Of a stretch of 64,000 bases of DNA, positions 30,818-63,757 are shown in pieces (position 1 is the first letter of the stretch; each line of letters opens with the position of its first letter). Made by a program: the position numbers and the translations under genes. Origin of the DNA: Octopus sinensis (Eukaryota); NCBI RefSeq assembly GCF_006345805.1, contig NC_043003.1:71114001-71178000 (forward strand), in the 5' to 3' direction. Below the pieces are notes generated by a model. The model was not told the DNA's origin and ran no database searches. It saw only the letters and a list, made by a program, of their open reading frames with translations.

Positions 30818-30988
30818 GATTATCGGTTGAATATTTGCGTGAAGCCTTGAAGAAAGCAATGAGAAAAAAAGATAAAGAGAGTCTAGAAGAAACCATTGAA
30901 AAATGCGTAGAGTTCAATTATCCTGAGTTAGAATCTGAAATACACCACGCTAGAGATATTTTGGAACTTATGCGCACTGGCCGAGCAG
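30818..30988 (+). CDS. Repeat exon R6 (171 nt, type A)
   Basis: gatag|GA...GCA G|gttaga; GLSVEYLREALKKAMRKKDKESLEETIEKCVEFNYPELESEIHHARDIL... Confidence 0.85.
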
Positions 30989-31779
30989 GTTAGAATTTCT
31001 TTTGTACATTAAAACAAAGAAAAGTATTTATATGATTATTATGTAAAGTAATCATTTGGATAAATGATTGTAAATTATCTTTAAGAGATCACTGTTAAAT
31101 ATATTTAAATCAACGTATGTATTTCTAAAAATACTTGCCCTCGCTAATGTCAAGAAATTTATTTGAAATTTGTTTTGTAAACCGAATATTACATGTGTTT
31201 ATGTGTGTGCGTGTGCATGAGCATGCGGGAATACATACACGCATGCATACATACACACACAGACATATGGTGATATGAATATATGTTTGATATGCTAATA
31301 CTGACAGTATATATTTGAATTATCGTTTTTGTTAATTCTTTTCATTTTACTAATGGCGGTTTTTATATCTTCTGTGTGTCGGAATCCAAATTCCTCATCG
31401 ATTTGTGATGGTGTGTGAGTTGAGCGTATGTTGTGCAAAAAAATTGTGGGTAATTTTACAATTTGTTTGACCGCTCCTCTCAGAATGCATACTCAGTTTT
31501 CTTTCACAATGAACATAGAATACGTACGGAATATATATATCTGTCATAATTTCCCTTCTGATTGTAAGGAGTAACTTAATTTATATATCTACATTTTAAC
31601 AGCCTGTCATTAATTAAACAATATATTTTCTCTTCTCTATAAATGTCTGTATGATGGAATGCGTGTATGTATATTTATATATTATATTAATTAAATGTTG
31701 TAGACTTCATCATTTTTTGAGATTTTGGCAACGTGTAAATTTCTCAATCAGTCTGTTTCCTTTTGTGTAATTGTCTCTA

Positions 31780-32060
31780 TCCCTCTCTCTTTCTCTCTTC
31801 CTGTTTCTTTCTTTCTTTCTTTCTTCTTTCTTTCTTTCTTTCTTTCTTTCTCTCTCTCTCTCTCTTCTTCAATTTGTCTTTTTCTCTGAATATGTCTGTG
31901 TATGCCTTTATCCTAGTTTTTGCCTGTCTTTCTGTGTCTGTCTTTGTGTATATCTCTTTGTTTTTGACTGTATCTCTTTATGTTGTCAGTTACTTTCTTC
32001 CTGTTTGTCCGCGTCTCTCTGTTTACTCGTCTGTGTCTTCTTTCTTTCCTTCCTTGAAGT
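31780..32060. repeat. (CTTT)n/(CT)n pyrimidine-rich tract
   Basis: Direct inspection. Confidence 0.85.
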
Positions 32061-32184
32061 AAATATGTACAGTAATATAGATTTACAACATTTCTGATAT
32101 ATAGTAAAGAATACATAGAACAGATATAATTGAGAACAAGGAAACTGTTTTCATATCTGATATATGGAATTCCTAATCCACCAG

Positions 32185-32358
32185 GTTCTAAATCACCATT
32201 TGCTTTGCGGGAACAACTGAATAAAGCGATAGATGAAAATGACATTGATGCTTTACAGAAAACTATTGAAGAGTGTGAAGAAACCGGATATGCCGAGCTT
32301 GGATACGACTTGAGTCGAGCGAGAGATAAATTGCATAGTTTAGGATGTGGTAAAGGAG
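32185..32358 (+). CDS. Repeat exon R7 (174 nt, type B)
   Basis: ccag|GT...GGA G|gttagc; GSKSPFALREQLNKAIDEND...ECEETGYAELGYDLSRARDKL... Confidence 0.88.
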
Positions 32359-32831
32359 GTTAGCTATATTTTCTAGTATTTCCTACCCTTTAAAATACCT
32401 ATTAGAAAATGCATTAGCATTCAGCAATTTTTTTTCTATCAAGTGGCATTACTGGAATTTTAAAGTGCATTAAAATTTGTAATTAATCAGCTAATTACAG
32501 ACACAAGTTTGCAATAATGATAAAAGAATATTGTACTTTCTGATGACAGAAACAAAACAGACCTCGAAGTGAATTTCTTAGCTGTGAGTTAATAGTGTCT
32601 TTAGATTTTACTAAAGCAGCTATCGATAATTTTAAATGTAATGAACTCTTTTAGTTTACCTTATAAATATCCAACGCCACAGAACACATGGTAAAATATT
32701 AGGAATGCGAATCGATATGGTTTAATACGTAACGGCTTTCAAATAATTAACCTCAAATGTCATGTTGATACGTTTTCTTTCATTTAACTTTATAGATAAA
32801 ATTTTAAGCTTTGTTTCATTTTATCAAAGGC

Positions 32832-32886
<55 letters not shown>

Positions 32887-32888
<2 letters not shown>

Positions 32889-33296
32889 TGTACAAAGGAG
32901 CGTGGGTAAGGCCAGAACAATTCGAAGTAAATGCAAGGCAAATCTCAAGAAAACAAATATATGAATTAATAATGTAGGCTTACCTTTCATTCAATATTTC
33001 GTGGTTATGACCTGATTTTCAAGAAATTAACGAATGTTGCCGATGTGCGTGTGTGTGAGCGTGTGTGGAGTGGACATGCGCGGATAGATGTTGCTATAGT
33101 AACCAGCTAGCTTCCGGTAACTTTCTTCTGTTGTTGATATTTGATTTTCTTTAATGTATGAGGATGGCCCCGGATGGATAACCCCAAAATATTGCATGCA
33201 AGGGAAGCCTACATTAATTCAAATATTTGTTTTCTTGAGATTTGTTTTGCATCAGTTTCACATTCTTCAGGCCTTACCCACGATCCTGTATACAAT
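32887..33296. repeat. Inverted repeat, ~110-bp arms, in the R7-R8 intron
   Basis: cgtgggtaaggcc...aaatctcaagaaaacaaatat...aatgtaggctt at 32887-33000 mirrored at ~33186-33296. Confidence 0.7.
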
Positions 33297-33328
33297 ATAT
33301 TCTACACAATGCTTCACAGTAATTACTC

Positions 33329-33377
<49 letters not shown>

Positions 33378-33404
33378 CGATTCTTAATTCATTCCATTAA
33401 TCAG

Positions 33405-33578
33405 GTACACAAACACCTGATTCGTTTCGTGAAAAACTAAAATCCGCAATGAAGTTAAAAGAGAAGCAAAAACTAGAAGAAGCGATTAACGAATGTGTAG
33501 CAGCGGGATTTTCGGAACTTCAAACAGATATCCATGAAGCAAGGGATATGTTTTATGTTCTTGGTGGAGGTGTTGGAG
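33405..33578 (+). CDS. Repeat exon R8 (174 nt, type A)
   Basis: atcag|GT...GGA G|gtacaa; GTQTPDSFREKLKSAMKLKEK...ECVAAGFSELQTDIHEARD... Confidence 0.87.
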
Positions 33579-33959
33579 GTACAACAGCTATCATGATTTA
33601 TTTTCATACAATTTTTATATGTTGGCATAATTTTAAGGGAAAACAAAATTATTTAATTTATGCTCTTTTCTTTTTAAAGTCGTCTTAGTGAATTATTAAG
33701 TCGTGTCTCAAAATATGTTTTTTTTTATAAAATTACTCAGTTTTGTTTTTATCAAATTTCGTGGACTATAAAATCTTTATAATCACCAAATTTATAATGA
33801 TAACACAGCTTTAAATGAATTCAGTAATTCGGCATATTCTAATATTTGTAGCATGTAAATCAATTTTCAGAGTACTAATGTTTAAACAATCCTTACGCAT
33901 ACAGTAAATAATTTTAGTAAACTTTGATGGTTGTCAATGTAATGTAATATAATTGCTAG

Positions 33960-34133
33960 GTATTGAGACTCCCCAGAACTTACGCGAAAAATTGAACTCA
34001 GCAATAGAAAAGAAAAATGTTGAAGATCTTAAAAGTGTTATTGCAGAATGTGAACAGATTGGTTATCCAGAACTTGGAGCGGAATTGTCTAAGGCTCGTG
34101 ATACGTTGGAAAGCTTAGGTGGTGGCCGAGGAG
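33960..34133 (+). CDS. Repeat exon R9 (174 nt, type B)
   Basis: gctag|GT...GGA G|gttagc; ...ECEQIGYPELGAELSKARDTLESLGGGRG. Confidence 0.88.
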
Positions 34134-34477
34134 GTTAGCTTAAAGATTTTCAATACTGTGTTTTGAATTGACATTAAAAGAAAAAAAAGTAAAAGTGGTT
34201 ATAAATTTCTTTTTTGGTGGCTATTTCCTGGATAACAAATTGAATATTACTTAAAAGTTAGAAATTTGTAAAGAAGTTTATTAAATAAAATGTTCAAATG
34301 AAGATAAAAATTTCAAGCGTAAACAGTCGTACGAAAGATTGGATTTTATCGTAAATAATATCTAAAATTATTTACTATTAAATACGTTAGAAAAATGTTA
34401 AGATATGCATATTTTGATAAAATTTATCGTTCATTTGCTGTAATATAATCCTCAAGATCTATTACTTTGTAAATCAG

Positions 34478-34651
34478 GAATCAAATCTCCTGATGAATTA
34501 CGTAAGAAATTAATGGCCGCAAGAAACAATGACGATAAGTCAGAGCTTGAACGAATTATTCTTGAATGCGCTGCAGCTGGAATGCACGAATTAGAAGCTG
34601 ATATACAAGAAGCAAGAGATAGCTTATATTTGTCAGGAGCAGCATTGCAAG
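34478..34651 (+). CDS. Repeat exon R10 (174 nt, type A)
   Basis: atcag|GA...CAA G|gtcaga; GIKSPDELRKKLMAARNNDDK...ECAAAGMHELEADIQEARDSL...; not in ORF track. Confidence 0.87.
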
Positions 34652-35204
34652 GTCAGATAATGCTTATATAATAACGAACTTATTTATTTGCTTTGATTTG
34701 TGGTTCATGAATTATTGCTGAAAATAGAACTGTCGAGATGTTTGGAAAAAAAAAACAAAAACAAAAGAACATCTTTATTACTTTTTATTCTAGTATTAAT
34801 ATTTTGAAATTTCAATGATATATGTTCATGCTAAAGTACTTTTATATGCGGACAGTACTTTCATGATAAATGATTTTGTTACATAATTTCCAAATGGACC
34901 ATTGTGAGACATATATTATAGACAACACTGTCGAAAACTATGGGGCGCCCTACAAATAAAAAAAAATTCAATCGCGTTTTAGTTCATTCTGTTGGGGATC
35001 GATATATAATTTTTAAAATGTATATATATTCCAATTTTATATATGATACCATACATATTTTAAACATTTCCCAATGTACAGACTCATACATGCCCACTCA
35101 ATCATTTAACTATGCGTCTTTATAGTAAAAATAAATCGTAAATTAAAAAGAATATTATTTGTTATTACAAAATTTATATAAATTTGTGAACGTTTCCTGT
35201 TCAG

Positions 35205-35378
35205 GTCAGAACTATGCTGAAGCATTACGTCATCGCCTGCAAACTGCAATTACAGACCAGGATAAGAGAGCATTGGAAACTTTAATCTATGAAAGTGAAA
35301 ATGCTTGTTTACCAGAACTTGGCTTTGAGGTTTACAAAGCCAGAGAAATGCTTGAAAGTTTAGGAGGTGGTTCTGGAG
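35205..35378 (+). CDS. Repeat exon R11 (174 nt, type B)
   Basis: ttcag|GT...GGA G|gtattg; ...ESENACLPELGFEVYKAREMLESLGGGSG. Confidence 0.87.
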
Positions 35379-35599
35379 GTATTGAGCAATATTCTATTTT
35401 CAAAATTGAGTGATTGGTTTGACATCATATTTGTAGTTCTCATATGTTATTAAAATCCTTGCACCATTCAACTATCTGCTGATGTATCGGATGAAACAAC
35501 TGATTAAAATAAATTATATGATTATTAATTAAACTTAAAATTAGTAAACAATAATCGTAATAGTATCCAATTTATGACAACAAATTCTAATAGTGTTCA

Positions 35600-35667
35600 C
35601 GGTGATATATGTATATATGTACGTATGTATATATTTATATGTGTATATCTATATATGTATATATATT

Positions 35668-35714
<47 letters not shown>

Positions 35715-35716
35715 AC

Positions 35717-35747
<31 letters not shown>

Positions 35748-36010
35748 CATGTATATATACATGTATATATATATATGTACATCTATATGTATATATATAT
35801 ATATGTATATATATACATATATATACATGTATACATATATATGTATACATATATGTATACATATACATGTATACATATATATGTATATATACATGTATAT
35901 ATATGTGTATATATAGATGTATATATACATGCATGTATATATATGCATATATAAATATATACATACATATATATATATGTATGTATATATATTTATATGC
36001 ATATATCTAT

Positions 36011-36058
<48 letters not shown>

Positions 36059-36130
36059 AGATGTATATATGTATATATGTGTATATGTATATGTGTATAT
36101 GTATATATGTGCATATATATATATATATGC
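35600..36130. repeat. ~530-bp compound (TA)/(TG)/(CA) microsatellite
   Basis: Direct inspection; source of the YI/YM-rich spurious ORFs. Confidence 0.95.
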
Positions 36131-36606
36131 ATTCGTAGCCTGCTCTCCTTACAGTTTCGTCCGGTTACACTTGAGACTGCTCAAATCTGTCTGACTCCAA
36201 TTATCTAAGCTAAGAGCATTAAATATTTAGGAAGATAGGAAGGGAATGTGTACGACAAGAAAGACAAAAAAAAACTAAAAATACGAAGAAAATGTTACTC
36301 ATTTACACATATACAAACAACAATAAAATAACAACAGGTGTCTTTCGACTAATAGAGACGAATCAAGTTGATCTGGCGTGTGTGGATTGAAAGCCTCGAG
36401 GCAGGAACGAGACCGACATTTTTTTGCTGACATTCGTAGCCTTGTTATCAAAGTGCAAGGATACTTGCCATTAGCAACTGATGCTTTTTTTCCCCCAAGA
36501 GCCAAGTCTCCCCCTACCCTAGCTTCAAGTGAAATTGTATTATATTTAGTACATGTGTTTATACTCTAAAGCTATCTCTTCTAATATGAAACGTTTTATT
36601 TCTCAG

Positions 36607-36954
36607 GATATTTATCTCCTGACATCCTTCGTAAGAAGCTTAAGGCGGCTAAAGAAAGAAAAGATATTGATGACCTAGGAAGAATTATAAATGAATGTGT
36701 AGCAGCTGGCATGCCGAAGTTAAGTTCCGACATCATTGATGCCAGAGAGAGCTTAGATATTCTCTGTGGGGGAACAGGAAAGATGAAACCCTCCGAAATT
36801 TTGCATAATGAGCTAAGGGAAGCAATATCAAGTAAAAATATAGACAACCTGAATAAATCTATTGATGAGTGTGAGGCTGCCGGTTATCTTGAATTAAGCC
36901 ACGATTTAAAGAAAGCTAGAGCTACACTGGAATCGCTTGGTGGATGTTATGGAG
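36607..36954 (+). CDS. Repeat exon R12 (348 nt, fused A+B double unit)
   Basis: tctcag|GA...GGA G|gtgaga; two tandem units (ECVAAGMPKL then ECEAAGYLEL) in one open frame. Confidence 0.88.
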
Positions 36955-37712
36955 GTGAGATAACTATCACGTGTTTCTCACTCGTAATTGTAATTCATGT
37001 TTTAAATGAAAATATATTTGGTACATAGTTACCCATTTCTTAACTTTGCTCATAGAAAAAACAGTGATGTGATTTTGTCACTTAAAAACAAGGAATATGA
37101 ATGTGGAATATGGAATTTTTTATTAAACATGCATGATTTTTACAACGTATAATTAAAAATTGCCACTTAAAATTAATTAAATATTTCGCATGGTGACGAG
37201 CATTATCGAATTGCTTTAATTAAATAAATGGAATTAAATGCTCTATTAGCAAAACCTGATTTAACACTGTATGGCAGTGAACACTATATAACAATTCTGT
37301 TGTTACCATTTTAGCCAACAATGTCGGCAGACTCATATTGTAGTTACTGTATCTACTGCTAACTGAAGGCATTTGAAATACCTTATGTAACTAATACTCT
37401 TGGGATAAGCAGAGGAAGTATATCCCCAATTCTATTCCTCTCAGATCTGAAGACTAGTGATTGCGTAAATATCAATGCTATTGATGACGCTACATTGGTG
37501 GAAGTGGTGGAAACATTAGAACGCCGAACAATAAATTACAGTATTTTAGTACTGTCAATGTCGCTTTTGCATTTAAACCTTGCCATCGTGATTTACTCTG
37601 CTTTTACACCGTCGAGGGTGGGATGTGATCGTGATTTAGTATTCACTAGAAATATTGAACTTATATACTGTCAAATGTCATAAATATCATTCATATTATT
37701 TGATTTGTCCAG

Positions 37713-37886
37713 GTTCCAAGACACCAGATATTTACCGGAATAAAATAAGAACTGCAATTAAAGAAAAAGATAAATCGGCATTGGAAAAAGCCATTAACTC
37801 TAGCATAGCTTTAGGCATGCCAGAGTTGGATTCTGAAATACTCCAAGCGAAAAAAGCACTAAAGCGTTTGAAACAAGACTTTAAAG
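37713..37886 (+). CDS. Repeat exon R13 (174 nt, type A)
   Basis: gtccag|GT...AAA G|gttaca; ...SSIALGMPELDSEILQAKKAL... Confidence 0.87.
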
Positions 37887-38664: not shown

Positions 38665-38838
38665 CACGTAAACCCGTTGAAATTCTTAGAAGTGAGTTAC
38701 AAGAAGCTACGAGAAGCAAAGACAAATCAAATTTGGAAAAGCTTATTGGTGAATGTGAAATAGCTGAATATCCTGAATTAAGCATCGATCTATGTAAAGC
38801 GAGAGATGCCTTAGAAAGCTTAGGTGGTGGTCGTGGAG
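38665..38838 (+). CDS. Repeat exon R14 (174 nt, type B)
   Basis: actag|CA...GGA G|gtcagg; ...ECEIAEYPELSIDLCKARDALESLGGGRG; not in ORF track. Confidence 0.86.
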
Positions 38839-39249: not shown

Positions 39250-39597
39250 GATCTAAAACATCTGCTACTCTTCGAGAGAAAATTAAGACAGCTGAGGAAA
39301 GAAAAGATATTGATGGTCTAGAGAAATGTATAAACGAATGTTTATCGGCTGGCATGTCCGATTTGGATTCTGATATCAGTCGTGCTAGAGATAGTTTACA
39401 TGTTCTACGTGGAGAATCAGGAACGGCGAAGAGCTCTCAAGATTTACAGGACAAATTGTCGAAAGCAATTTTAAGTAAAGATAAAGAGAGCTTAAGCAAA
39501 TCTATTGACGAGTGTGAAGATACTGGTTACCTTGAATTGAGCCCCTACCTGAAGAATGCAAGAGATATATTAGAAAGTCTTGGTGGAGGCCGTGGAG
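39250..39597 (+). CDS. Repeat exon R15 (348 nt, fused A+B double unit)
   Basis: catcag|GA...GGA G|gttagc; ECLSAGMSDLD then ECEDTGYLELS units in one open frame. Confidence 0.88.
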
Positions 39598-40146: not shown

Positions 40147-40320
40147 GCCTTAAGACACCGGAAATATTGCGTCAAAAACTTGAAAGTGCCAGGAATCAGA
40201 ATGACAAACAACATTTGGAAAAAGTATTAAATGAGTGCATTGCTGCTGGTATGCCAGAACTGGACAATGATATTGAGTTAGCTAGGAATGATCTCGATTA
40301 CATAGGATATGATGTTAGAG
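40147..40320 (+). CDS. Repeat exon R16 (174 nt, type A)
   Basis: tatcag|GC...AGA G|gttaga; ...ECIAAGMPELDNDIELARNDL... Confidence 0.88.
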
Positions 40321-41312: not shown

Positions 41313-41791
41313 TGACGATCTGGCAGAAACGTTAGCACGCCGGATGAAATGCTTATCGGTCGACTTTGCCTTTCATTCTTTCGGGGTCGATAAATTAAGT
41401 ACCAGTTGCATACCGGCTCGATCTAATCGACTGCCCACCCTCACCAAAAATTTCGGGCCTAGAGTAGAAAAGATTATTTACAGGTGTTATGCAATATTTG
41501 TTGATCTACTAATATAATATGCTTATAAGGTTTTTCCTTATATAACGGATATTACCATTCATGAAAAACGTGTAAGATGACTTAACCAAATAAGTTATGA
41601 ACAAAATCCCATATTTTGTGTGAGTGTGTATGTGTATGTGTGCGTGTGTATGTATGTATGTGTGTATGTGTGTGTGTGTTGTATGTGTGTGTGTGTGTGT
41701 GCGTGTGTACTTCTCTACGCAATAAAACCATTATTCTTAAAATTTCCAAGTAAGTCATATGAGACATAAGCCTAATGTTTCTGTTTACTAG

Positions 41792-41965
41792 GAATAAAAA
41801 CCCCTGAAACTTTACGCGATGAAATAAAATCTGCGGTTAGACTGAAAGATAAAAATGCTCTGAAAAGGCTCATTGATGAATCAGAGAAATGTGCATTTCC
41901 AGAAGTTGCAGGTGATCTACGAAGAGCTAGAGATACACTGCAAAGTCTCGGAGGAGGTCGTGGAG
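41792..41965 (+). CDS. Repeat exon R17 (174 nt, type B)
   Basis: tactag|GA...GGA G|gtttga; ...ESEKCAFPEVAGDLRRARDTLQSLGGGRG; not in ORF track on + strand. Confidence 0.86.
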
Positions 41966-42907: not shown

Positions 42908-43081
42908 GAAGTCTAACTCCAGATGACCTTCGTAAGACTTTACAGAATGCAGTTGCACAAAAAGATAAACCTGTAATACAAAGGGCAATTAGTAAATGCA
43001 TTGCAGTTGGTATGCCAGAACTTGACAATGATATTCTTCAAGCTAGAAAAATGTTGGAAATACTCAAAGGAACTTCGGGAG
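42908..43081 (+). CDS. Repeat exon R18 (174 nt, type A)
   Basis: taccag|GA...GGA G|gttagc; ...KCIAVGMPELDNDILQARKMLEIL...; not in ORF track. Confidence 0.87.
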
Positions 43082-43937: not shown

Positions 43938-44111
43938 ATTTTAAACCACCCAATGTTTTACGAGATCAATTAAAGATGGCAATGAGGCAGAAGAACATTC
44001 CTGCCTTGCAGAAAGCAATACAGGAATGCGAAGCGGCTGAGTATCCGGAGATAGGGACCGACCTCCGAAAAGCCAGAGAAACTTTAGAAAGCCTAGGAGG
44101 TGGTCGTGGAG
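43938..44111 (+). CDS. Repeat exon R19 (174 nt, type B)
   Basis: cattag|AT...GGA G|gttagc; ...ECEAAEYPEIGTDLRKARETLESLGGGRG. Confidence 0.88.
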
Positions 44112-45055: not shown

Positions 45056-45226
45056 GAACTAAGTCACCTGATTTGTTACGTGAGAAACTGAAACTGGCAA
45101 TGAGAAAGAACGATCAAGATTTAATTATGGATAGTATTAATGAGTGCATAGCATCTGGTTTTTCCGAATTAGACGCTGATGTACAGAAAGCGCGTGATAC
45201 TGTGGGATATTATCAGGAAACTGAGG
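45056..45226 (+). CDS. Repeat exon R20 (171 nt, type A)
   Basis: cttcag|GA...GAG G|gtaaca; ...ECIASGFSELDADVQKARDTV... Confidence 0.85.
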
Positions 45227-46927: not shown

Positions 46928-47101
46928 ATCATAAGTCACCCGAAAAATTACGAGACGAGTTAAATGCAGCCATGCGGCAGAAGGACAGATCAAGTTTAGA
47001 ACGTTCTATATCTGAATGTGAAGAAGCTGGATATCCTGAGATCAGTTCAGATTTGAGCGAAGCTCGAAATGCACTGGAGAGTTTAGGTGGAGGTCGTGGA
47101 G
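46928..47101 (+). CDS. Repeat exon R21 (174 nt, type B)
   Basis: gacag|AT...GGA G|gttaga; ...ECEEAGYPEISSDLSEARNALESLGGGRG. Confidence 0.87.
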
Positions 47102-49134: not shown

Positions 49135-49308
49135 GACTAAAAAATCCCGACAGTTTACGTGGCAAGCTGAAGATGGCAGTAAGATGGAAAGATAGACCTC
49201 ATTTGGAAAGCGTTATAAATGAATGTGTAGCATCGGGTTTTCCAGAGCTGGAAACAGAGGTACACGAAGCTAGAGATGTACTTAACCTACTTGAAGGAGG
49301 AGTTGGAG
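49135..49308 (+). CDS. Repeat exon R22 (174 nt, type A)
   Basis: gttag|GA...GGA G|gttagg; ...WKDRPHLESVINECVASGFPELETEVHEARDVL... Confidence 0.88.
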
Positions 49309-49840: not shown

Positions 49841-50014
49841 GTAAAATGTCACCGAAAGATTTACGTGATAAACTCAAACAAGCAGTCAACTGGAAAGATA
49901 GATTACATTTGGAGAAAGCCATTGATGAATGCGAAGGTGCTGGTTACCCTGAACTGGGTAGCGATCTTCGTAGGGCACGAACAACTTTGCAAAGCATAGG
50001 AGGTGGCCTCGGAG
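49841..50014 (+). CDS. Repeat exon R23 (174 nt, type B)
   Basis: tctcag|GT...GGA G|gttagc; ...WKDRLHLEKAIDECEGAGYPELGSDLRRARTTL... Confidence 0.88.
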
Positions 50015-50849: not shown

Positions 50850-51023
50850 GACATAAAACCCCAGAAGATTTGCGTGAAAAATTGGAGTCTGCAATGTTAC
50901 AGAAAAACAGACCGACTCTGGAAAGAATTATTAATGAATGTGTTGCCTCTGGATTTCCTGAATTGGATTCTGATATAAGCCGAGCTAGGGACCTCTTGAA
51001 AAAGTTAGGTGGTGGTCGTAGAG
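50850..51023 (+). CDS. Repeat exon R24 (174 nt, type A)
   Basis: tcttag|GA...AGA G|gttagc; ...ECVASGFPELDSDISRARDLL... Confidence 0.88.
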
Positions 51024-51246: not shown

Positions 51247-51420
51247 CTCACATGACTCCCGATGCATTGAGAAGTCGGTTAAAAATGGCCATCGATGAAA
51301 AAGACCAAGGCAAATTAGAAGCTGTTATTATTGATTGTGAGGAAGCTGTCTATCCAGAACTAGGGTCGGAACTTCGAAAAGCTAGAGATACTTTGGCGAG
51401 TTTGGGCGGTGGACGAGGAG
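51247..51420 (+). CDS. Repeat exon R25 (174 nt, type B)
   Basis: tattag|CT...GGA G|gttagc; ...DCEEAVYPELGSELRKARDTLASLGGGRG. Confidence 0.88.
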
Positions 51421-51701: not shown

Positions 51702-51875
51702 GTGTAAAAAATGCAGAAGCCATTGCGGATAAGATGAAGCGAGCTATTAGACGAAAAGACAGACTAAGTTTGGAAAGAATTATAAATGAGGCAATTGCAG
51801 CAGGATTGCCGGAATTAGACGAAGAAATTGAAAATGCTCAACAAATTTTAGGTCAACTGGACAATACAACAAAAG
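51702..51875 (+). CDS. Repeat exon R26 (174 nt, type A)
   Basis: Weak cttgaag|GT acceptor; AAA G|gttgga; ...EAIAAGLPELDEEIENAQQIL... Confidence 0.82.
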
Positions 51876-53438: not shown

Positions 53439-53612
53439 ATTCTAAATCTCCTGACGCACTCCTTGCCTGGCTGAAAGACGCTTCTAGACAGAAAAATGTT
53501 CAAGAATTGGTAAAAGCTATTAATGAGAGTGAAAAGGTCAAGTCTCCAGAGATTTCTTTTGCTCTTCGTAAAGCCAGGCGTGTTCTGCAAAGTTTAGGCG
53601 GACATAGTGAAG
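53439..53612 (+). CDS. Repeat exon R27 (174 nt, type B)
   Basis: tatcag|AT...GAA G|gttagc; ...ESEKVKSPEISFALRKARRVLQSLGG...; not in ORF track. Confidence 0.85.
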
Positions 53613-54012: not shown

Positions 54013-54186
54013 ATGCTAAGACTACAGAGAACCTTTCGGAAAAACTAAGAAATGCAATTAAAGAGAAAGATATCGTAAAGTTAGAAAAAACAATTAATGA
54101 TTGCGTGTCAGCTGGTATACCAGAACTTGATTTCGATATACAAGAAGCCCGAGACCTTCTCAGCATATTACAAGGTGGAGCAGGAG
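54013..54186 (+). CDS. Repeat exon R28 (174 nt, type A)
   Basis: tattag|AT...GGA G|gttaga; ...DCVSAGIPELDFDIQEARDLLSIL... Confidence 0.87.
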
Positions 54187-54694: not shown

Positions 54695-54868
54695 GTTTCA
54701 AAAGCCCTCATATATTGCGAGAAGAAATGAAGCAAGCACGTCAAAAACAAGACAAAGAAGCTTTAGAAATAGTGATTAAGGAATGTGAAGCTGCCGGATA
54801 CCCGGAACTAAGCTTTGACCTGCAAAAAACAAAATACATGTTACGGTCTGTTACTGGTGGTCGTGAAG
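54695..54868 (+). CDS. Repeat exon R29 (174 nt, type B)
   Basis: caacag|GT...GAA G|gttaga; ...ECEAAGYPELSFDLQKTKYML...; not in ORF track. Confidence 0.87.
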
Positions 54869-54957: not shown

Positions 54958-55067
54958 ACAGGGGGTGATTTGCAACGTATCTGAAATATTATTATGGCAT
55001 GAATTTCTTCAGCTATGCAAGGTTCATAAACATATAAAGCGGTATAAACACAGACTAGTATACATAC

Positions 55068-55103
<36 letters not shown>

Positions 55104-55328
55104 TAAGGCGGCGAGCTGGCAGAATATTTACCGCGCTGGACGAAATACTTAGCGGCATTTCGTCCGTCGCTACGTTCTGAGTTCAAATTCCACTAAGGTC
55201 GACATTGCCTTTCATCTTTTAAGGTCGATAAATTAAGTACCAGTGAAACACTGAGGTCGATGTAATCGACTACTCCCTTTCCCCAAAATTTCAGGCATTC
55301 TGTCCATAGTAGAAAGGATTATTATTAT
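55104..55328 (+). mobile_element. Near full-length SINE with (ATT)n tail
   Basis: ggcggcgagctggcagaa...gagttcaaattcc...gtcgacattgcctttcat...gataaattaagtaccag...gtagaaaggattattattat. Related copies at ~11797-11965(-), 12305-12475(-), 21047-21190(+), 41318-41480(+). Confidence 0.75.
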
Positions 55329-55561
55329 CATTAATACTCTAATTTGTGTTTTGTGTGTACCTGACGCGTATGTCACACTTAAGCGAAAGAAATTTTGTTG
55401 CTTAAATAAAAATTTCTTGTCACTAAATCTCTTGTAATTTCTGGAAGTGATCTGAAATCACCACCTACGTGTTAGTATTACTACATCTCAACACCCATAC
55501 CTACTGGGCCACCGAAGCAGCAACGATCTTAATGAGAAAATTAACATAAATATATATACTT

Positions 55562-55640
<79 letters not shown>

Positions 55641-55983: not shown

Positions 55984-56157
55984 CCCTTGCTAGCGCTGAA
56001 GTTCTGAAGGAGGAAATAGAATCAGCTGTTGCACAGAAATCTCGTTCACGTTTAGCGAGATTAATTGAAGAATGCGAATCTGTTGGGTATCCTGAACTTA
56101 GTCACCATCTACGTCGTGCACGCGACGCATTGGAAAATTTAGGAGGCGGTAGAGGAG
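55984..56157 (+). CDS. Repeat exon R30 (174 nt, type B)
   Basis: tgttag|CC...GGA G|gttaac; ...ECESVGYPELSHHLRRARDALENLGGGRG. Confidence 0.87.
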
Positions 56158-56648: not shown

Positions 56649-56822
56649 GGAGTAAATCGGCTAGTGAGCTACTTGAAAAATTAAAAAGTGCCATTGAAGG
56701 AAAGAATGTATTAGCTTTAGATAAAGCTCTAAGCGAAAGTGTGTCTGCTGGAATGCCAGAACTCGATTTTGAAATCCAACATGCCCGGAACGTATTAAAT
56801 ATTCTAGATGGTGGATCTGGAG
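56649..56822 (+). CDS. Repeat exon R31 (174 nt, type A)
   Basis: atttag|GG...GGA G|gttcgg; ...ESVSAGMPELDFEIQHARNVLNIL... Confidence 0.86.
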
Positions 56823-57158
56823 GTTCGGAAAATTCCAAGAATATTTTTTATATTTATAAAACCATTTAATCAGATTACTTTTAGAAATTAATTTTCCTTT
56901 GTTACACTTGTTTAACGTCAATGAAAATACTTCTGAAACATATACAGTTGATATTTAATTTAAATTTAAAAACTTTAATGCAATTTGCACATGAAATCGT
57001 AATGCAGAGTATACAATGCATAATTAAAGAAAATAATATGGTTTCATACTTATCACTGTGTAATTTGAAATATTTGATTAGGTTAAAATATAGCATGGAT
57101 TTATTTCTGTTGATATTATTTTATTTTTATTTAAAGTAATAAATACTTGTGTTAACAG

Positions 57159-57332
57159 ATCTTAAATCCGCAGATGTTTTACGAACCGAACTAGATAATG
57201 CTATAAAAGACATGGATATACCACAACTGGAGAAAGTTATCAAAGAATGCGAAGATGCCGGATTTCCGGAACTTGGTTACGACCTACGTCGTGCAAGAAA
57301 CACTTTGAAGAGTTTAGGGGGCGGTTACGGAG
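57159..57332 (+). CDS. Repeat exon R32 (174 nt, type B)
   Basis: taacag|AT...GGA G|gttagt; ...ECEDAGFPELGYDLRRARNTLKSLGGGYG. Confidence 0.88.
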
Positions 57333-58120
57333 GTTAGTTTTGATATTTTCTTATGGGGTATGATGTCATCTATATCCCTTTACATGATATGAGGTTGGTG
57401 GTAGAAAGGAAAGAATTTATTCTTACACCTGCGGCCTGGATCTGGCCAGGATTATGGCAGGAAACAAGACTCTGGAAATGTACGGAAGACGTTGAGCGAT
57501 TACGTGTATCACCCAACAACAGAAACACTTGTTTCATCGGGCTTCCACGCAATTTCCGTCTACCAAATGCTTCCCAGAAAGCTCTGGGTATCCTTAAGCT
57601 GTGGAAGAAGCAACTTAATTTAAGGTGCTATCCTGTGGGATTGAATTCAAAAATACATAATTCCGAGGTGAGCTGTGTAACTACCTGCAAACATATTTAT
57701 TTGTATTTCAGTAAGAAACAAACTTTAGATTTGTTTCCAGGAGGTACTTTAGCATATTTAGAATTCTTTAAATACTTCAAATTTTACTAGTTTTTATAAA
57801 TTTTAATCTTATCTACAGTGGGTAAGTCATGTAATGCACTGCATTCAAGAAATTTGGATATGTTTCTCTATATAATGAAGCTCTATTAAGAATTGAGTTT
57901 TATATCGGTTGATGACGGTATTTGAACATTTAGAGTCCTTCAAATTGCAGGAGATCCCAGGCATTGCAGTCTCTGGATTATGCTATCCAAAATAAATATC
58001 GGTTTAAACACAACAGAAACAAAATATTTATGCACGAATTAAGTGCCTTGCTGATTTTTATTTTTTTTTTATTTAAATAAGATTTCCTGAAAAATCAATG
58101 ATCGTATGGTTAAGGCTATG

Positions 58121-58124
<4 letters not shown>

Positions 58125-58154
<30 letters not shown>

Positions 58155-58240
58155 TGTATGTATGTATGTATGTATGTATGTATTTATGTATGTATGTATG
58201 TATGTATGTATGTATGTATGTATGTATGTATGTATGTACG
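58125..58240. repeat. (TATG)n tetranucleotide microsatellite
   Basis: Direct inspection. Confidence 0.95.
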
Positions 58241-58402
58241 AATTTATACATGTATAAACATATGTATCCATGTGAGTATGCATGCATGCTTGCTTATATG
58301 GATGGATAGATGTGTATAGGTATATATTTATAAGCATGAAGACTTGCTTATTCATAAGTATAGTTTTAATCAAGGAACATTTTTATATATCAATTTCGAT
58401 AG

Positions 58403-58576
58403 GCAGTAAAACAGTTGAAACTTTATCGCAAAGACTTGCTGTCGCGGTAAAAGAATGCGACCCGGAAAAAATACAGAAAGCTATAAACGAATGTTTGGCA
58501 TCAGGTTTCCCGGAACTTGAAACCGATGTGAAAAAGGCCAGAAAATTCCTCCGAAGTCCTCACTTTTATGACGCAG
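58403..58576 (+). CDS. Repeat exon R33 (174 nt, type A)
   Basis: cgatag|GC...GCA G|gtcaga; ...ECLASGFPELETDVKKARKFL... Confidence 0.85.
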
Positions 58577-59007
58577 GTCAGATACCGTACAATATTTGCC
58601 ACCCAAATATTTTATTAGTTATCGTAATAAATGTTTTAAATAGTGGTTATTTACGAATACACTTTTGCTTTTGTTGCTAATAAACTTCAAGTATAGTGGA
58701 TGATGTGAATAAAATCAAAGACATGAATACAATCAACGATGTACGCAATATTTCTATGTTATTCTATATTTGTTTCAGTCATGAATTACAGTCACACTGG
58801 AGCGCTGCTTGTACTTATTTTAAATCTAGTACTTAATCTATCTTGCTTTTTGTCCGAGTCGTTACATTACGGGAGTCATAAACCCCGATTGTCAAGCGTT
58901 AAGAGACTAACACAAAGACGCACAGAATTCGCATCTGTGTGTGTATGTATTTAGGATGTTTCGCTATATAATGAAGCTGTATTTAGAATTGGATTTTATA
59001 TCGGTTG

Positions 59008-59103
<96 letters not shown>

Positions 59104-59913
59104 GCATACCAAATTTACTCACAGACATAGGGTAATAATAGAAGATACTTGCCCTAGGTGCCGTACTGTAGGATTGAACGTAAAACCATGTGGCTAAGAA
59201 GCGAACTTCGTTATCACGAAGATATGCTTTCATCTAAAATGATATGACTCTCTGAGGAAAATCTCCGGCCTTCCACCTGAGAGTTAGAGATATGCCACAA
59301 TACAAACATTTTTATAGCACAATAATAATTTTAAACGAGTAATCGCTCCAAATTTTTTAAACAAATATTTTAATTTTTGTTTTAAAATTCAAAATGTGAT
59401 TTTTGTAATGCAAAAATGTAAATTCCTTTAAATTCCTTTATTGAAAACAAGAACCCAAAGATATTTTGTTAAAGAAAGTCGGAGTGCTTAATGAAGACGT
59501 CCGGCTGGACATTGTCGGATAATATTATTTCGACTTCCATTTTGCAATGACAAATCAACAGAATACCTTAAAAAGAGATCGCTGGATAATATTGTAAAAG
59601 ACATGTGTAAGAAATAAGATATGCTGCTTACCAGAAGAATAATTTCGGTTATATGTCTGTCCGATTAAGGCCTTGTTGAAATCATTATGTACTCTCAAAG
59701 AAGTTAACACAAATGTTAAACAGATAATATTTCATACAGATTTTCACTTATCACCCTTGGCTCCTTCCTTTCTCTTTTACGAAGCTGGCATCGATTTTCG
59801 ATTTCAAATTTAACTTCTTTAAGTTTCACATGAAATTTATTCGTAGTGTCGCTAATCTTATTAGCCAGTCGTATAGTTGTGATAAATTGTTACATGTTTA
59901 TTCCAATCGTTAG

Positions 59914-60072
59914 AAACTCTACGGACCAAACTAGTTACAGCAATGAAACAAAAAGAACCTGGAGAACTAGCTAAAGCTATTAGGGAATGTGAGAGAGCCG
60001 AGTATCCTGAACTAAACAGAGATCTTCGGAAAGCCAGAGACTTACTTAAATCCCTTGGTGGCGGCCTCGGAG
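59914..60072 (+). CDS. Repeat exon R34 (159 nt, 5'-shortened type B)
   Basis: cgttag|AA ACT CTA...GGA G|gttaga; ETLRTKLVTAMKQKEPGELAKAIRECERAEYPELNRDLRKARDLLKSLGGGLG; not in ORF track. Confidence 0.8.
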
Positions 60073-60392
60073 GTTAGAGTTCAACAGTCTTTTATATTAA
60101 GAATATGCTTTATTTGTAAATTGGAATTAATTATGTAATAATATTAGCATGGCTTAATAATTAAAGTGAACGCATGAGACAATATTTTTATAGCATGTAC
60201 TTCATCACTGAGATTGCTGACGCTTAAAAAATGTAATAAACATAAAATCTTTTAACTGAAACCAAAAAACCAAGAGAAGCAATGTAATTATTATGAATGC
60301 ATTCGGTAAAAGTTGATAATCTACGTGCGCATTACATTCTATATGTTATATCTTTATGCTCTGCTTAAAAATCGGTATCTAATTATTAATAG

Positions 60393-60566
60393 GAACAAAG
60401 ACACCTGATTGTTTAATAGAAAAACTGAAATCAGCTCGAGCAAAGAAGGATAGAGATTTAATTAAAAATACGATAAATGAATGTGTATCGGCTGGAATGT
60501 CAGAACTGGACAATGAAATACAACTTAGTCGTGAAACTCTCGATATTATGGAAGGTGGCACAGGAG
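60393..60566 (+). CDS. Repeat exon R35 (174 nt, type A)
   Basis: taatag|GA...GGA G|gttaga; ...ECVSAGMSELDNEIQLSRETLDIM... Confidence 0.87.
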
Positions 60567-61169
60567 GTTAGATTATATTTATTTGTTCTAGGATAAGAAT
60601 AATAATTGAAAACGCAATTGAATTTTTAAACTATGTTTAAAATAGTATTTTCTCATATAAAAATGACGATTATCATAGATTAGCATTTTTATTATTTTCT
60701 TTTAACAATCTCACTATTTTGTTCTTTTATAATATTTTTTATTTACAGTTTAAGAATGCTTATTTTTTAGAGGGTTATAATTTGTTTTTAATATTTATTT
60801 TAAGAAATTGTTATTAGTCTTTATATTTTTATTCTTCACTGATAATTTGCATCACCGAATATGTTGGAAATCAAAGTTATATTCCGATCGCTTAACTCCA
60901 GCACCATACTTATGATAATTCTTCAAAATATTGATTATTTGTCAAGTTGTAAAATCTAAATACAACGCTTTTTATGTGTTCCATATTATCATTTACATTG
61001 GATGCAAAATGGTCTAGTACCAATCTCAAGGAAAGGAAATATATACACTAAATATTGAAAAACTATAAGTTTATCAGTTATTGTAGCTATAACCTATAAC
61101 GAAATATTGATTTTAAGAATCCACTCATGTTTTACTACAACTGAGAATCAACCAAACTGGTTTTCCTCC

Positions 61170-61985
61170 TTACAGACGGTATCTAATATCAGAGCCTAAA
61201 TGTTGCTATATAATATTCCAGACACCATCGTAGATGCAATCAAAATTCTCTATAAAAACACCATCGCTCAGATTTTATCAACTGTTGGTAATGAAAGTTA
61301 TCTGAAATCATGACTAGAGTAATACCCCCTTGTTGTTCATTGGAGCCCCGGACTACTTATGAATTGCAGCAACTAATGCAAAAGAAACAGACGTCATGCT
61401 TCAACTGTAATAATTCATACAGACTATGCAAATTGAGAAGACTAGGAAATAAATCGAACGTCAATGACAATAAGACTGGTTTCAACCATCCGGAAGAAGA
61501 CATTAAATCATCAAAAGCTACAAACTTCTGTTGCCTGGGATCATGGACAGAAAGCTCAAAGAGAAACAAGAGAGTAAGAACTAAATTGGCGTAATCAGCG
61601 CAATGAACAAGATATCTGTAAGATTGCAAAGAATTCTATTTAGTAGGCTCAAAATACAGTTTTATAAGAGGAACTGTGGAAAACATATTGGTATTTGTAT
61701 CTGAAAACAATAAAAAGCAGGTTAAATGGAACGTGTACCAAGATGTTAAGAACTATCATTCATTGAAAAGCGTACTATATGGAAATTAGCCAATATTATC
61801 AGACTTAATTTATGGGACATATTTGGCAAAGAAAAGACGAAGTTGTACATCAACTATTAATATGAGAAACAGTACATGATAAAAGAGGCAAACCTTGTTG
61901 AATATATGTGGAGCAGTTGCTGGATGGCAGTTACATTGAAAAATTGTATTGCAGAGATGATACAGGAAAGGGAATTATCTAATCG
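61170..61985 (+). mobile_element. Degenerate RTE-like LINE RT remnant
   Basis: Fragments YNIPDTIVDAIKILYKNT, F.CLGSW.ESS..., L.GTCTKMLR, LYG. across many frameshifts. Confidence 0.65.
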
Positions 61986-62247
61986 ACTGCTCACTGGAAT
62001 TCAAGTGTGCTCAACTGAAACATACACACACATCATTCTTCCTCTTTATCTCTCACTATTCTACCCCATCTGTCTCTCTTGCTGTTGCAAAAATGCAGAT
62101 ATCGAAACTTTATTAAATTAAAACAGGAAAAAAAAACAAATGGATAAATCGATTATAATTTATTTATGTTTAACTACATTACGCTTAGATAGGGGTTAAC
62201 ATACTAAAATGTTTTTCTTTATATACACTTTTATTTTTAATCATCAG

Positions 62248-62421
62248 CTACAAAAGCTCCTGATGTATTGGTCAGTCAACTGAAAAGTGCTACAAGACAA
62301 AAAGATAAGGCAGCTCTAGCAAAACTTATCATTGAATGCGAAGAAGCAGGTTATCCAGAGATTGCCAATGATCTTTGGAAAGCTAGAGAAACTCTTCATA
62401 GTATTTGTGGAGAATATGGAG
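62248..62421 (+). CDS. Repeat exon R36 (174 nt, type B)
   Basis: catcag|CT...GGA G|gttaga; ...ECEEAGYPEIANDLWKARETL...; not in ORF track. Confidence 0.87.
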
Positions 62422-62907
62422 GTTAGAGCATATTCTATTTTAGGAATACATATTTCAGTTTGTATTATATATGGTTAACTAGGAAGTTGAATGAACTTAT
62501 ATTTTGTTTTCCTTTGGAATTATAGTCATAGAATTTTAAAACGGAAAGACGATATATATTATTTTCTAGATTCTCTTTTGAGCACTAGCTCCCTAGTATA
62601 CTTCAGAAAATTGTGCGTAAATAACATTCTTAATACCTTTCTTGCATAAACTTATGTTTATTCTAGTTATTCGTAAATTAACTATTTTATAGAATATTTA
62701 TTTTTCTAAATGTTTCTGAAAACAGAAGTATTGCAAAAGTGATTATATTACCCTAATAAAAGAGCAACTATAACAGAAATAGAAGAAATTTTTATGATCT
62801 ATTCTCTGATAGAGTATCTGAGAAAAACAACGAACATAAACATTGCTGCTTTATATAATGACGATAATGTGATATATGTTACTGACTCGTATATATAATA
62901 TTACCAG

Positions 62908-63080
62908 GGAGTCAAACTCCAGAACTGCTTGCTGCTAAATTGAAGAGAGCTACTCGAACAAAAGACAAATATGCTTTAGAGAAAGCAATCAATGAGTGTG
63001 TAGCTTCTGGATTTCCTGAACTGAAACTTGAAATAGCAAAGCAAGAAATTTCCTTTTCAATCTTGAAGATTATGGTAGAG
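62908..63080 (+). CDS. Repeat exon R37 (173 nt, type A, apparent 1-nt deletion)
   Basis: taccag|GG...AGAG|gttaga; ECVASGFPELKLEIA, then the repeat consensus (ARNFLFNLEDYGR) continues in a shifted frame after gcaaagca at ~63035-63042. Confidence 0.75.
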
Positions 63081-63583
63081 GTTAGATATATTTTAAAATT
63101 AATTATGAGCTAAATCTGAAAGTCGTTTTTAAAAGTCGTTTTTAAATCTGAAAATCGGTGTTTGTAAAAATTTGAAAAATATTTATAAGTATTAAAATTA
63201 AATAATAACAAGCTTTTATTATGATATTTTATATTTTCATTTTGTTTTATTCTCTTAAGGCGGTACATATTTAAACTTAAATCACAATTGACTGCATGTA
63301 ATCTGAAATTAAATTTAACAACAAGGAATATAAGAACATCAAATGAAATCAAAATGTGTGGCATAAATGACACTTTTCTATATTTAACAAGTAAATAGAT
63401 ACGAATCAGAGAAAGGTTAACAAATATTGTAAAAAATACTTTTACTCTTATTATGTAACTAAATGACATGTCTACACGTAGTCAATAATGTTGAATGTAA
63501 AAATCGGATAGTATGGATCAAGCTAATGCATGCTTTAGCGAATGAATTATGTTACTTTAAAATAATCCATATTTGATTGGTAG

Positions 63584-63757
63584 GAAGAAATCACCGGGAT
63601 GTTTTGCGGGACATGTTATTGATGGCTATGAAAAGAAAGAGTCCACCAGAATTAAAGAAAGCAATTGAAGAATGTGAAGAAGCAGAATATCCAGAGCTCA
63701 ATGAAGAGCTACGAAAAGCTCGAGATATCCTGGAGAACTTGAGTGGTAGTAGTGGAG
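63584..63757 (+). CDS. Repeat exon R38 (174 nt, type B); gene continues beyond window
   Basis: tggtag|GA...GGA G|gtcagc; ...ECEEAEYPELNEELRKARDILENLSGSSG. Confidence 0.86.

Follow-up and report, generated by a model that had tools for sequence, protein, structure and literature searches.

The repeat exons in the window (the whole 64,000-nucleotide stretch of octopus DNA analysed here) form a real but fairly ordinary super-repeat of two old subtypes, A and B. This super-repeat has a true period of four units, A1-B-A2-B, or approximately 232 aa. The window, which most likely comes from Octopus sinensis, contains the first 40 of approximately 95 small helical repeat exons of an octopus KY-like giant gene, whose whole product has 6,596 residues in the public model P0156.

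The host gene and its N-terminal part

The product runs from a KY-like N-terminus through an array of approximately 95 units to a C-terminal domain, which lies beyond the window. The N-terminus consists of a transglutaminase-like core, three Ig-like_KY domains and a K/E-rich coiled coil, all encoded on the + strand. Part of the core (P0156 residues 96-157) is encoded by the exon at 3-188 and the remainder (residues 158-291) by the exon at 7839-8240. The large exon at 9660-11015 (residues 292-743) encodes the three Ig-like_KY domains (Pfam PF23265, E = 1.7e-59, 3 stretches), a feature of the KY family. The coiled coil (residues 743 to approximately 868) is encoded at 12846-13223 by an exon with a GTGAGT donor. 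The translations of these four exons match P0156 exactly. Just upstream of the array, a 40-nt exon (PEDSYFGRPSSTR, 19119-19158, + strand) takes the phase from 0 to 1. The PF01841 core is divided between the exons at 3-188 and 7839-8240, neither of which scores by itself; the Argonauta ortholog P0005 matches Transglut_core at residues 94-202 (25.1 bits, cut-off 23) and also has Ig-like_KY. The spliced translation of R1-R38 is identical to P0156 residues 882-3077. An annotation of the gene, as an uncharacterised protein, already exists.

The repeat exons

When the window was translated in all six frames and searched with a profile, 40 units were identified, all on the + strand, between 19614 and 63757. 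A DNA profile (nhmmer) returned the same 40 units and no extra or decayed copies in the window. We number all 40 units, while the preliminary description counted 38 exons (its R30 is our R32 and its R38 our R40). The unit is 58 aa long and is nearly always encoded by a 174-nt phase 1-1 exon; 34 units are single 174-nt exons of phase 1-1 bounded by AG and GT. Odd lengths are seen in R4, R6 and R22 (171 nt), in R36 (159 nt) and in R39, which has 173 nt and a 1-nt frameshift. The two 348-nt exons are fused pairs, R12 with R13 (36607-36954) and R16 with R17 (39250-39597). Their splice sites define both, and both are A then B, as had been claimed. In a DNA self-comparison the fused exons align with each other end to end (69.7% over 366 nt), and the repeat exons are only approximately 70% identical and the introns are unrelated. 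The repeat exons have a common unusual donor, GAG|GTTAG, which is possibly weak.

Two unit classes and their alternation

The preliminary description had proposed that the units alternate between two subtypes. When run without labels, spectral clustering recovers its classes in 40 of 40 units, and so does the sign of PC1. The units before the regular alternation fall with either class in the clustering. R1 (19614-19787) and R2 (22702-22875) are B-like by exon anatomy, clustering and the 93-unit tree, and each has a 1:1 Argonauta ortholog. R3 (27161-27334) is A-like by exon anatomy, tree and clustering. R4 (28393-28563; splice sites and clustering) and R5 (30276-30449; exon anatomy and clustering) are again B-like.

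The regular alternation starts at 30818, the first base of R6 (30818-30988), which is type A with a non-Gly tail (tree and clustering). The order described earlier is correct once renumbered: A and B alternate from R6 through R31, R32 adds a second B in a row, and the A,B order resumes from R33 to R40, whose last base is 63757. The first type B unit of this series is R7 (32185-32358; exon anatomy, tree and clustering). Exon anatomy and clustering likewise place R9 (33960-34133), R11 (35205-35378), R15 (38665-38838), R19 (41792-41965), R23 (46928-47101), R27 (51247-51420), R29 (53439-53612), R31 (54695-54868) and the extra unit R32 (55984-56157) in type B, together with R21 (43938-44111), which is also placed by the 93-unit tree. 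The other B units are R25 (49841-50014; exon anatomy), R34 (57159-57332; exon anatomy and the 93-unit tree), the short R36 (59914-60072; splice sites, with a boundary consistent with P0156), R38 (62248-62421; exon anatomy and match to P0156, of which it is the last window unit) and R40 (63584-63757; exon anatomy). No remnant of an A exon was found with the nhmmer DNA profile in the intron preceding R32. The O. bimaculoides model P0001 likewise terminates in B-B.

The chance of at least 34 runs given 17 A and 18 B units is 7.7e-9. Across P0156 units 6-93 the alternation breaks only four times (84 runs in 88 units, P = 4.5e-20). The class motifs are as first noted. Column 32 is V, I, L or A in every A and E in every B, and across the 88 units it is wholly class-specific, with several different hydrophobic residues. 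The classes also differ at columns 36 (M/F in A, Y in B), 40 (D/E, G/S), 43 (I/V, L) and 52 (hydrophobic, S), and B ends in GGGRG.

A tree had been proposed as the check on the two classes, and it separates them. The ML tree of the 40 units needs one change, on a branch with support 88/78. In a 93-unit tree, built from the window units plus distal and Argonauta units, the A/B split is a single branch (99/91). When the 12 diagnostic columns are removed this signal is weak (7 changes, compared with 11.9 in shuffles) and identity is 0.44 within a class and 0.41 between classes. Identity over the whole unit is 0.37-0.39 at odd lags and 0.44-0.476 at even lags (0.455 at lag 2). By these lag identities and the runs tests, units at the same position are more alike than adjacent ones, as in a super-repeat.

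A nested period of four units

The linker of A had been called variable. It is not simply so, being of two alternating subtypes, A1 with an IL.GG.G tail and A2 with a charged tail without Gly. Type A1 includes R8 (33405-33578) and R20 (42908-43081), identified by exon anatomy, clustering and tail type; R24 (49135-49308), R30 (54013-54186), R33 (56649-56822) and R37 (60393-60566), identified by exon anatomy and tail type; and the A units of both fused exons, R12 and R16. Type A2 includes R10 (34478-34651), R14 (37713-37886) and R18 (40147-40320) by exon anatomy, clustering and tail type, R22 (45056-45226) by splice sites and tail type, R28 (51702-51875) and R35 (58403-58576) by exon anatomy and tail type, and the frameshifted R39 (62908-63080) by exon anatomy. 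R26 (50850-51023), a type A unit in the tree, has the tail GGGRR; it is A2 by the tail rule and clusters with A2-like units.

The 43 A units form 37 runs of the two alternating subtypes (P = 2e-6). The subtypes differ also in columns 1-50, and the B that follows A1 differs from the B that follows A2 (permutation p = 5e-4 in each case). The paralog P0002 is built of near-identical four-unit copies. Because this period of four is nested in the repeat, a pair of 116 aa makes up only part of the module.

The pattern is shared with a more diverged octopod-like genome (L001), which has the same unit order, the same A1/A2 pattern, both fused exons (that of R12 and R13 at the same place) and all three linker types. 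R24 is 83% identical to its ortholog there. This conservation, along with the low DNA identity of the exons and the unrelated introns, marks the pattern as old.

The A-B pair as a candidate module

Each 58-aa unit is predicted by AlphaFold2 to be a three-helix bundle of approximately 50 residues with an 8-residue tail. The A-B target paired the O. bimaculoides orthologs of R24 and R25, and the latter was present in both targets. The A-B pair has a pTM of 0.60 and a 10-residue block containing its linker is ordered (mean pLDDT 75). The B-A pair has a pTM of 0.45 and its GGGxGG linker is disordered, with pLDDT below 50 at GGGLGG. The difference is modest, with a single A-B and a single B-A pair modelled from an alignment that is shallow (33 sequences). 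As modelled, the contrast between the linkers fits a Gly-rich hinge after B.

The preliminary description took a 116-aa AB pair as the real module and suggested that the hydrophobic residue of A might pack against B. In favour of the pair are the split in the tree, the fused A+B exons, the alternation over the whole array and in the diverged genome L001, the joint omission of R39 and R40 from P0156 and the higher pTM of the A-B model. Against it are the four-unit period and the lack of any sign that an A and the next B co-evolve or were duplicated together (Mantel r = 0.07, p = 0.2). In-register unequal crossing-over would also keep the alternation without any packing, and alternation in itself requires no selection. 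From the helix geometry we infer that columns 32, 36 and 40 would lie at the N-terminal end of the bundle, facing the preceding linker and not the next unit. The length of A2 units varies through their tails from 53 to 62 aa, which is odd if the A-B interface is fixed. As a physical module the 116-aa pair is thus weakly supported and incomplete.

Inclusion of units in gene models

The exons are all phase 1-1, so that skipping them in any combination keeps the frame. Co-inclusion of units had been favoured over mutually exclusive choice, and the gene models, which are the whole basis for this claim, agree in part. P0156 (R40 excepted) and O. bimaculoides P0001 include every intact unit in series. 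What P0156 omits in the window is the frameshifted A unit R39 and, with it, the partner B unit R40, even though R40 is an intact 174-nt exon. Other models omit large blocks. P0161 retains U1-2, U48-55 and U89-95, and Argonauta P0005 has 10 units. Where an A precedes the gap in these models, the skip joins A to B (U55 to U89 in P0161, U83 to U89 in Argonauta). No conserved docking or selector-type intronic elements were found in the self-comparison of the window. A mutually exclusive exon cluster was rejected on the models, which carry units in series, and no conserved intron sequence connects the units.

Comparison with known proteins

The N-terminal layout, with Ig-like_KY domains after a transglutaminase-like core, is that of KY, KY-like and LTD-1-like proteins. 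Haliotis proteins of KY-like layout (one named 'lim and transglutaminase domain protein ltd-1-like') carry a related helical repeat in 2-6 copies, compared with approximately 95 in octopus. Unlike the octopus units these have no Gly-rich linkers and no A/B classes. By eye, the C-terminal region of the Haliotis proteins looks similar to that of the octopus protein. Vertebrate KY is not known to have such a repeat array.

The likeness to titin and nebulin that was drawn earlier holds as an analogy only. Those proteins are also giant and modular, with higher-order periodic units in which equivalent positions are more alike and with symmetric exons that can be skipped in frame. However, they are built of Ig/Fn3 domains or 35-residue nebulin modules, whereas the octopus units are all-helical three-helix bundles with no Ig, Fn3 or nebulin homology, and the octopus period is a 2 within a 4 instead of 7 or 11. 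Spectrin-type repeats are likewise tandem three-helix bundles in an extended cytoskeletal rod, but a spectrin unit is approximately 106 aa with a continuous helix joint and the octopus unit is approximately 50 aa with Gly-rich linkers. The unit is half the length and has no Pfam spectrin match, and a spectrin repeat was ruled out.

The unit profile matches helical repeats ('L..AI...D...L..AI.EAE.AGL') in protist myosin tails of Rhodelphis and Symbiodiniaceae (E = 1e-13 to 1e-21, 15-18 stretches per protein), mostly over helices 1-2 or columns 8-50. Unlike the octopus protein these have a myosin head, no Gly linkers and no A/B classes. The likeness may be due to either homology or convergence. 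The repeat units have no match in Pfam, the unit has no significant match in the PDB by sequence or fold, and no literature on the repeat family was found, so that the family and its hierarchy look undescribed.

Origin and maintenance of the alternation

The explanation that we favour, and consider somewhat probable, combines duplicated exon blocks, selected classes and a segmented tether with hinges. Tandem duplication of multi-exon blocks would have generated the pattern, which in-register unequal crossing-over may have propagated. Selection would keep the class-specific residues (columns 29, 32, 36, 40, 43, 44 and 52) and the three kinds of linker. In favour of such selection are the nearly equal identities within and between classes outside the diagnostic columns, and column 32, which separates the classes throughout despite its varied hydrophobic residues. 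The protein would act mechanically as a long segmented tether or spring, in which the invariant GGGRGG after every B may be a flexible hinge and the A-to-B junction stiffer. The alternation could also hold adjacent bundles below approximately 40% identity and so reduce misfolding between neighbours.

A purely historical origin, in which the array grew by amplification from an ancestral block of two or four exons and the units are independent beads with no pair function, is unlikely in our view, though much of the pattern agrees with it. Alternation persists when unequal crossing-over between like exons inserts or deletes only entire periods, and P0002 shows a recent amplification of just such four-unit blocks. 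The Mantel test gives no A-to-B coupling, both AlphaFold2 models are two separate three-helix bundles, and the A/B signal is weak outside the diagnostic columns. Such an origin does not fit so well with class residues that stayed fixed though the rest diverged to approximately 44% identity and the introns became unrecognisable, with three linker types retained in a diverged genome, or with the greater order predicted for the A-B linker than for the B-A linker. Also unlikely, though a little less so, is the proposal that alternation was selected chiefly to keep co-translationally folding neighbours dissimilar, which would make an A-B interface unnecessary. The protection of tandem Ig domains from misfolding by divergence of neighbours has been described (PMC4660218), and the lower identity at lag 1 (0.37-0.39) than at lags 2 and 4 (0.455-0.476) agrees with this principle. 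However, the gap between neighbour and next neighbour is only about 8 points and lies in about 12 columns, small helical bundles may mis-pair differently from Ig domains, and the occurrence of the same class residues in all 88 units and the conserved linkers are left unexplained.

We regard as very improbable that the pattern encodes isoforms, with A and B, or single units, chosen by alternative splicing as mutually exclusive exons or regulated cassettes. The uniform phase, the shorter block-skipping models and perhaps the shared donor would allow it. The full-length models carry units in series, though, the self-comparison found no docking or selector-type elements, and the skips in the models drop long blocks rather than one exon per pair. 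A more speculative reading, and an improbable one, is that the four-unit super-repeat serves as a structural ruler along a periodic cytoskeletal or sarcomeric filament, with every super-repeat corresponding to a single period of that filament and with block-skipping isoforms that tune the length. If true, the protein would be a lineage-specific helical-bundle counterpart of nebulin and titin, derived from a KY-family protein of Z-disc type.

Implications

Little is understood of the KY family, whose members are scaffolds of the cytoskeleton and of muscle. As read from sequence, the finding is architectural. It describes a KY-family member with a rod of approximately 5,500 residues, made from 95 exon-sized three-helix bundles, whose strict two-class, four-unit order has outlasted substantial sequence divergence. 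The array offers a clean natural system in which to study the origin and persistence of super-repeats, the alternation of neighbours as a guard against misfolding of tandem domains, and symmetric exons that permit length isoforms.

Unit and exon structure of the array

The window contains 40 related units (R1-R40) of approximately 58 aa each, which lie on the + strand between 19614 and 63757. They were located with a profile built from a few motif matches, and a search of the window with a DNA profile recovered the same 40 and no further units. The sequence is eukaryotic in composition, with about 34% G+C and many microsatellites.

Every unit is bounded by AG and GT in a fixed register, and the 58-column alignment of the 40 units is gap-free. 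The standard unit exon is 174 nt and phase 1-1, with two bases of a split codon at the start and one base of the next at the end. R4, R6 and R22 have exons of 171 nt and R36 has one of 159 nt. Two fused exons, R12+R13 and R16+R17, are 348 nt each and carry two units apiece. The fused exons align with each other through their junction (69.7% over 366 nt), which suggests a single intron loss followed by duplication.

R39 (62908-63080) is 173 nt; it is one base short in a short A run, and the frame shifts by one base midway through helix 3. Either a genuine pseudo-exon or a fault in the assembly could account for this. R40 (63584-63757) is intact.

Several repeated structures lie in the introns. 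The intron preceding the array has a telomere-like (AACCCT)n tract at 14446-14526, flanked by 280-bp inverted repeats (13973-14252 and 14555-14833) with 94% identity to each other; the whole (13973-14833) probably represents a transposable element or foldback structure. Large palindromes or inverted-repeat pairs, 78-91% identical, at 6913-7525, 1303-1633, 21150-21506 and 17407-17608/18197-18398 resemble elements of the foldback or MITE type. The introns also carry, dispersed on both strands, a family of short interspersed repeats (about 110-190 bp, 72-91% identical), with copies at 11791-11942, 21046-21684, 22054-22256, 41358-41478 and 55138-55336.

The host gene

Spliced repeats used as a query matched octopod proteins only. 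The 90%-identity cluster of one match contained P0156, a KY-like NCBI gene model of 6,596 aa. Residues 882-3077 of P0156 are identical to spliced R1-R38, and the exon boundaries are thereby independently confirmed. One of the octopod matches, an Argonauta model, is complete in architecture: it has Transglut_core, three Ig-like_KY domains and a K/E-rich coiled coil, followed by the repeats and a C-terminal domain. N-terminal exons matching this architecture are found in the window at 3-188, 7839-8240, 9660-11015 and 12846-13223, together with a 40-nt exon at 19119-19158; the large exon (9660-11015) scores E = 1.7e-59 for Ig-like_KY. These exons and the identity of R1-R38 to P0156 place the entire window within one gene.

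P0156 skips both R39 and the intact R40, so that an A-B pair is absent together, and resumes with an A unit outside the window. A search with the N-terminal region yielded no further giant orthologs, and a profile of the A-B pair retrieved unnamed fragments only. Literature searches on KY in cephalopods, on hillarin and on the gene's LOC number found nothing relevant.

Alternation of two unit classes

The preliminary description held that the units alternate between two classes, A and B, from 30818 to 63757, the coordinates at which R6 begins and R40 ends. Label-free spectral clustering and PC1 reproduce these classes exactly over the 40 units. A and B alternate from R6 to R31, R32 is a second B, and the alternation continues from R33 to R40. 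Units R32 and R40 had previously been numbered R30 and R38, by exon rather than by unit. Before R6, clustering and PC1 place R3 as A-like and R1, R2, R4 and R5 as B-like. The probability of so many A/B runs arising by chance in the window is 7.7e-9. A decayed A exon was sought ahead of the extra B (R32) and was not found.

On a maximum likelihood tree of the 40 units the expected split of A from B requires one change, with branch support of 88/78. A larger tree of 93 units, which adds Argonauta units and, from O. bimaculoides models, distal units of the same gene, splits the classes on one branch with 99/91 support. It was rejected as a comparison with distant species: P0003 and P0004 are orthologous to the gene's distal part, so this tree shows that the classes hold array-wide and in the Argonauta orthologs. 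The differences between A and B are concentrated in columns 29, 32, 36, 40, 43, 44, 52 and 54-58. When those 12 columns are left out, a weak signal persists (7 changes versus 11.9 in shuffles).

P0156 as a whole has 95 units (U1-U95). U6-U93 alternate with four breaks only (BB at 31-32, AA at 55-56, BB at 75-76 and BB at 88-89), giving 84 runs among 88 units (P = 4.5e-20). The alternation is confirmed and reaches well beyond the window.

A period of four units

A/B alternation is real, but two units are not the full period. The A units fall into two subtypes. A1 has the tail [IL]L.GG.G, and the tail of A2 is charged, without Gly and often one residue longer. A1 and A2 alternate (37 runs among 43 A units, P = 2e-6) and also differ in columns 1-50 (permutation p = 5e-4). 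The B units that follow A1 likewise differ from those that follow A2 (permutation p = 5e-4). The true period is therefore four units, A1-B-A2-B, with three types of linker: A1 is followed by IL.GG.G, A2 by a charged tail that varies, and every B by SLGGGRG-G. Whole-unit identity within the window gave no period of four, which emerges only from the A tails and the complete array. Restoring R39 (A2) and R40 (B) in genomic order makes the local A1/A2 alternation regular, provided that U39 of P0156 (tail VLEFGSG), which the tail rule scored as A2, is counted as A1-like.

A repeat-only paralogous model of 2,023 aa, P0002 (O. sinensis LOC115214251), is located on the same chromosome-sized contig. 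It is built of near-identical four-unit copies (B, A2, B, A1), which indicates that the duplicated blocks are blocks of four. P0002 represents either recent amplification of a paralogous array or an artefact of assembly or annotation.

Age of the array

DNA identity among the exons of different units is only about 70%, and their introns have nothing in common but interspersed repeats. The duplications are therefore old and have proceeded without concerted evolution. The units of L001, a diverged octopod-like locus of 20 kb from another assembly (ENA ERZ21867824), are 41-83% identical to their positional counterparts. Their order also matches: A B A B [A1+B fused] A2 B [A1+B fused] A2 B A1 B A2 B A1 B A. 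Mean identity in the comparison with L001 is 0.53 at offset 8, 0.41-0.46 at the other even offsets and 0.37-0.39 at odd offsets. The Argonauta units are 1:1 orthologs of particular A and B units. The substitution rate per column between O. sinensis and O. bimaculoides is flat (4-10%) and uninformative.

Splicing and donor sites

The longest gene models contain every intact unit. A shorter model, P0161, skips two long blocks (U3-47 and U56-88), and its junction from U55 to U89 is still A to B. Both P0161 and the Argonauta ortholog P0005 retain U1-U2 and U89-U95 and lose much of what lies between. A border between a variable cassette region and constant C-terminal units may be marked by the BB break (U88-U89). 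Co-inclusion of units had been favoured over mutually exclusive choice. Nothing in the gene models suggests mutual exclusion, but co-inclusion is seen in gene models only. P0001 (94% identical, source 'metaclust') was dropped as a marine metatranscript that would prove co-inclusion; given its UniParc accession and its place in a cluster with the 6,596-aa NCBI model, it is probably an O. bimaculoides gene model.

The donors of the repeat exons carry T at +3 in 28 of 38 cases. Of these, 23 are GAG|GTTAG or GTTAA, in which the split Gly codon is followed directly by an in-frame stop. Donors of the four N-terminal exons are ordinary (GTAAGT, GTAACG or GTGAGT). GTTAG is found at 11 of 15 donors in L001; these donors are conserved in introns that are otherwise unrelated. 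Judged from sequence, the GTTAG-type donors may be weak or regulated splice sites.

Predicted structure and the A-B pair

AlphaFold2 was run on A-B and B-A pairs with 33-sequence alignments. Each unit is predicted to form three helices, at roughly residues 5-18, 21-34 and 37-53. The A-B pair (ortholog of R24-R25) has a pTM of 0.60 and a mean pLDDT of 75 over the 10-residue block that holds the linker. The B-A pair (ortholog of R25-R26) has a pTM of 0.45, and pLDDT falls below 50 at GGGLGG. This contrast, which comes from one pair of each kind, agrees with hinging after B and greater stiffness at the A-to-B junction.

No solved structure matching the unit was found by sequence or fold search. 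Sequence searches of the PDB returned designed helical proteins only (E of 0.003 or worse), and Foldseek of the A-B model gave no match below E = 0.3. Pfam scans with the units taken singly, in pairs and as the set of 39 identified no family.

The 116-aa A-B pair had been proposed as the module, by likeness to titin and nebulin. This proposal is partly supported. The super-repeat is real and long-kept. Its period is four, physical A-B packing is only weakly indicated, and titin and nebulin serve as analogies. Mantel and nearest-neighbour tests for an A-B versus a B-A register of duplication were not significant, nor was coupled divergence of an A unit with the next or the previous B.

Alternation itself needs no selection; whole periods are gained or lost when like units cross over. 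Selection is indicated instead by the class-defining positions, which stayed fixed while the remainder drifted. Across 88 units, every B has E in column 32 and every A has a hydrophobic residue there (V, I, L or A); elsewhere in the unit, identity within a class is about 44%, versus 41% between classes. The data are compatible with a semi-rigid A-B sub-module inside the four-unit super-repeat. They are also compatible with selection for dissimilar neighbours, a principle described in PMC4660218; identity between units is 0.37-0.39 at lag 1 versus 0.455 at lag 2.

Relatives and origin of the repeat

Among 1.84 billion representative proteins the unit profile matched 252 at E of 0.001 or better, most of them single-exon fragments. 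The long matches form two groups. One consists of protist myosins with 15-18 related helical repeats. Long helical-repeat arrays, some with myosin heads, are seen in P0018 (Rhodelphis), P0110 and P0164 (Symbiodiniaceae), P0012, P0087 and P0147; the octopus profile matches these protist proteins at E = 1e-13 to 1e-24, through homology or convergence.

The other group consists of Haliotis KY-like or 'ltd-1-like' proteins. These share the N-terminal domains of the octopus protein but have 2-6 repeats, whereas the octopod array has about 95. On this comparison the octopod array is a lineage-specific expansion, on a large scale, of a short repeat region that molluscan KY-like proteins already had. 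New features of the octopod array are its Gly linkers and its A/B and A1/A2 order.
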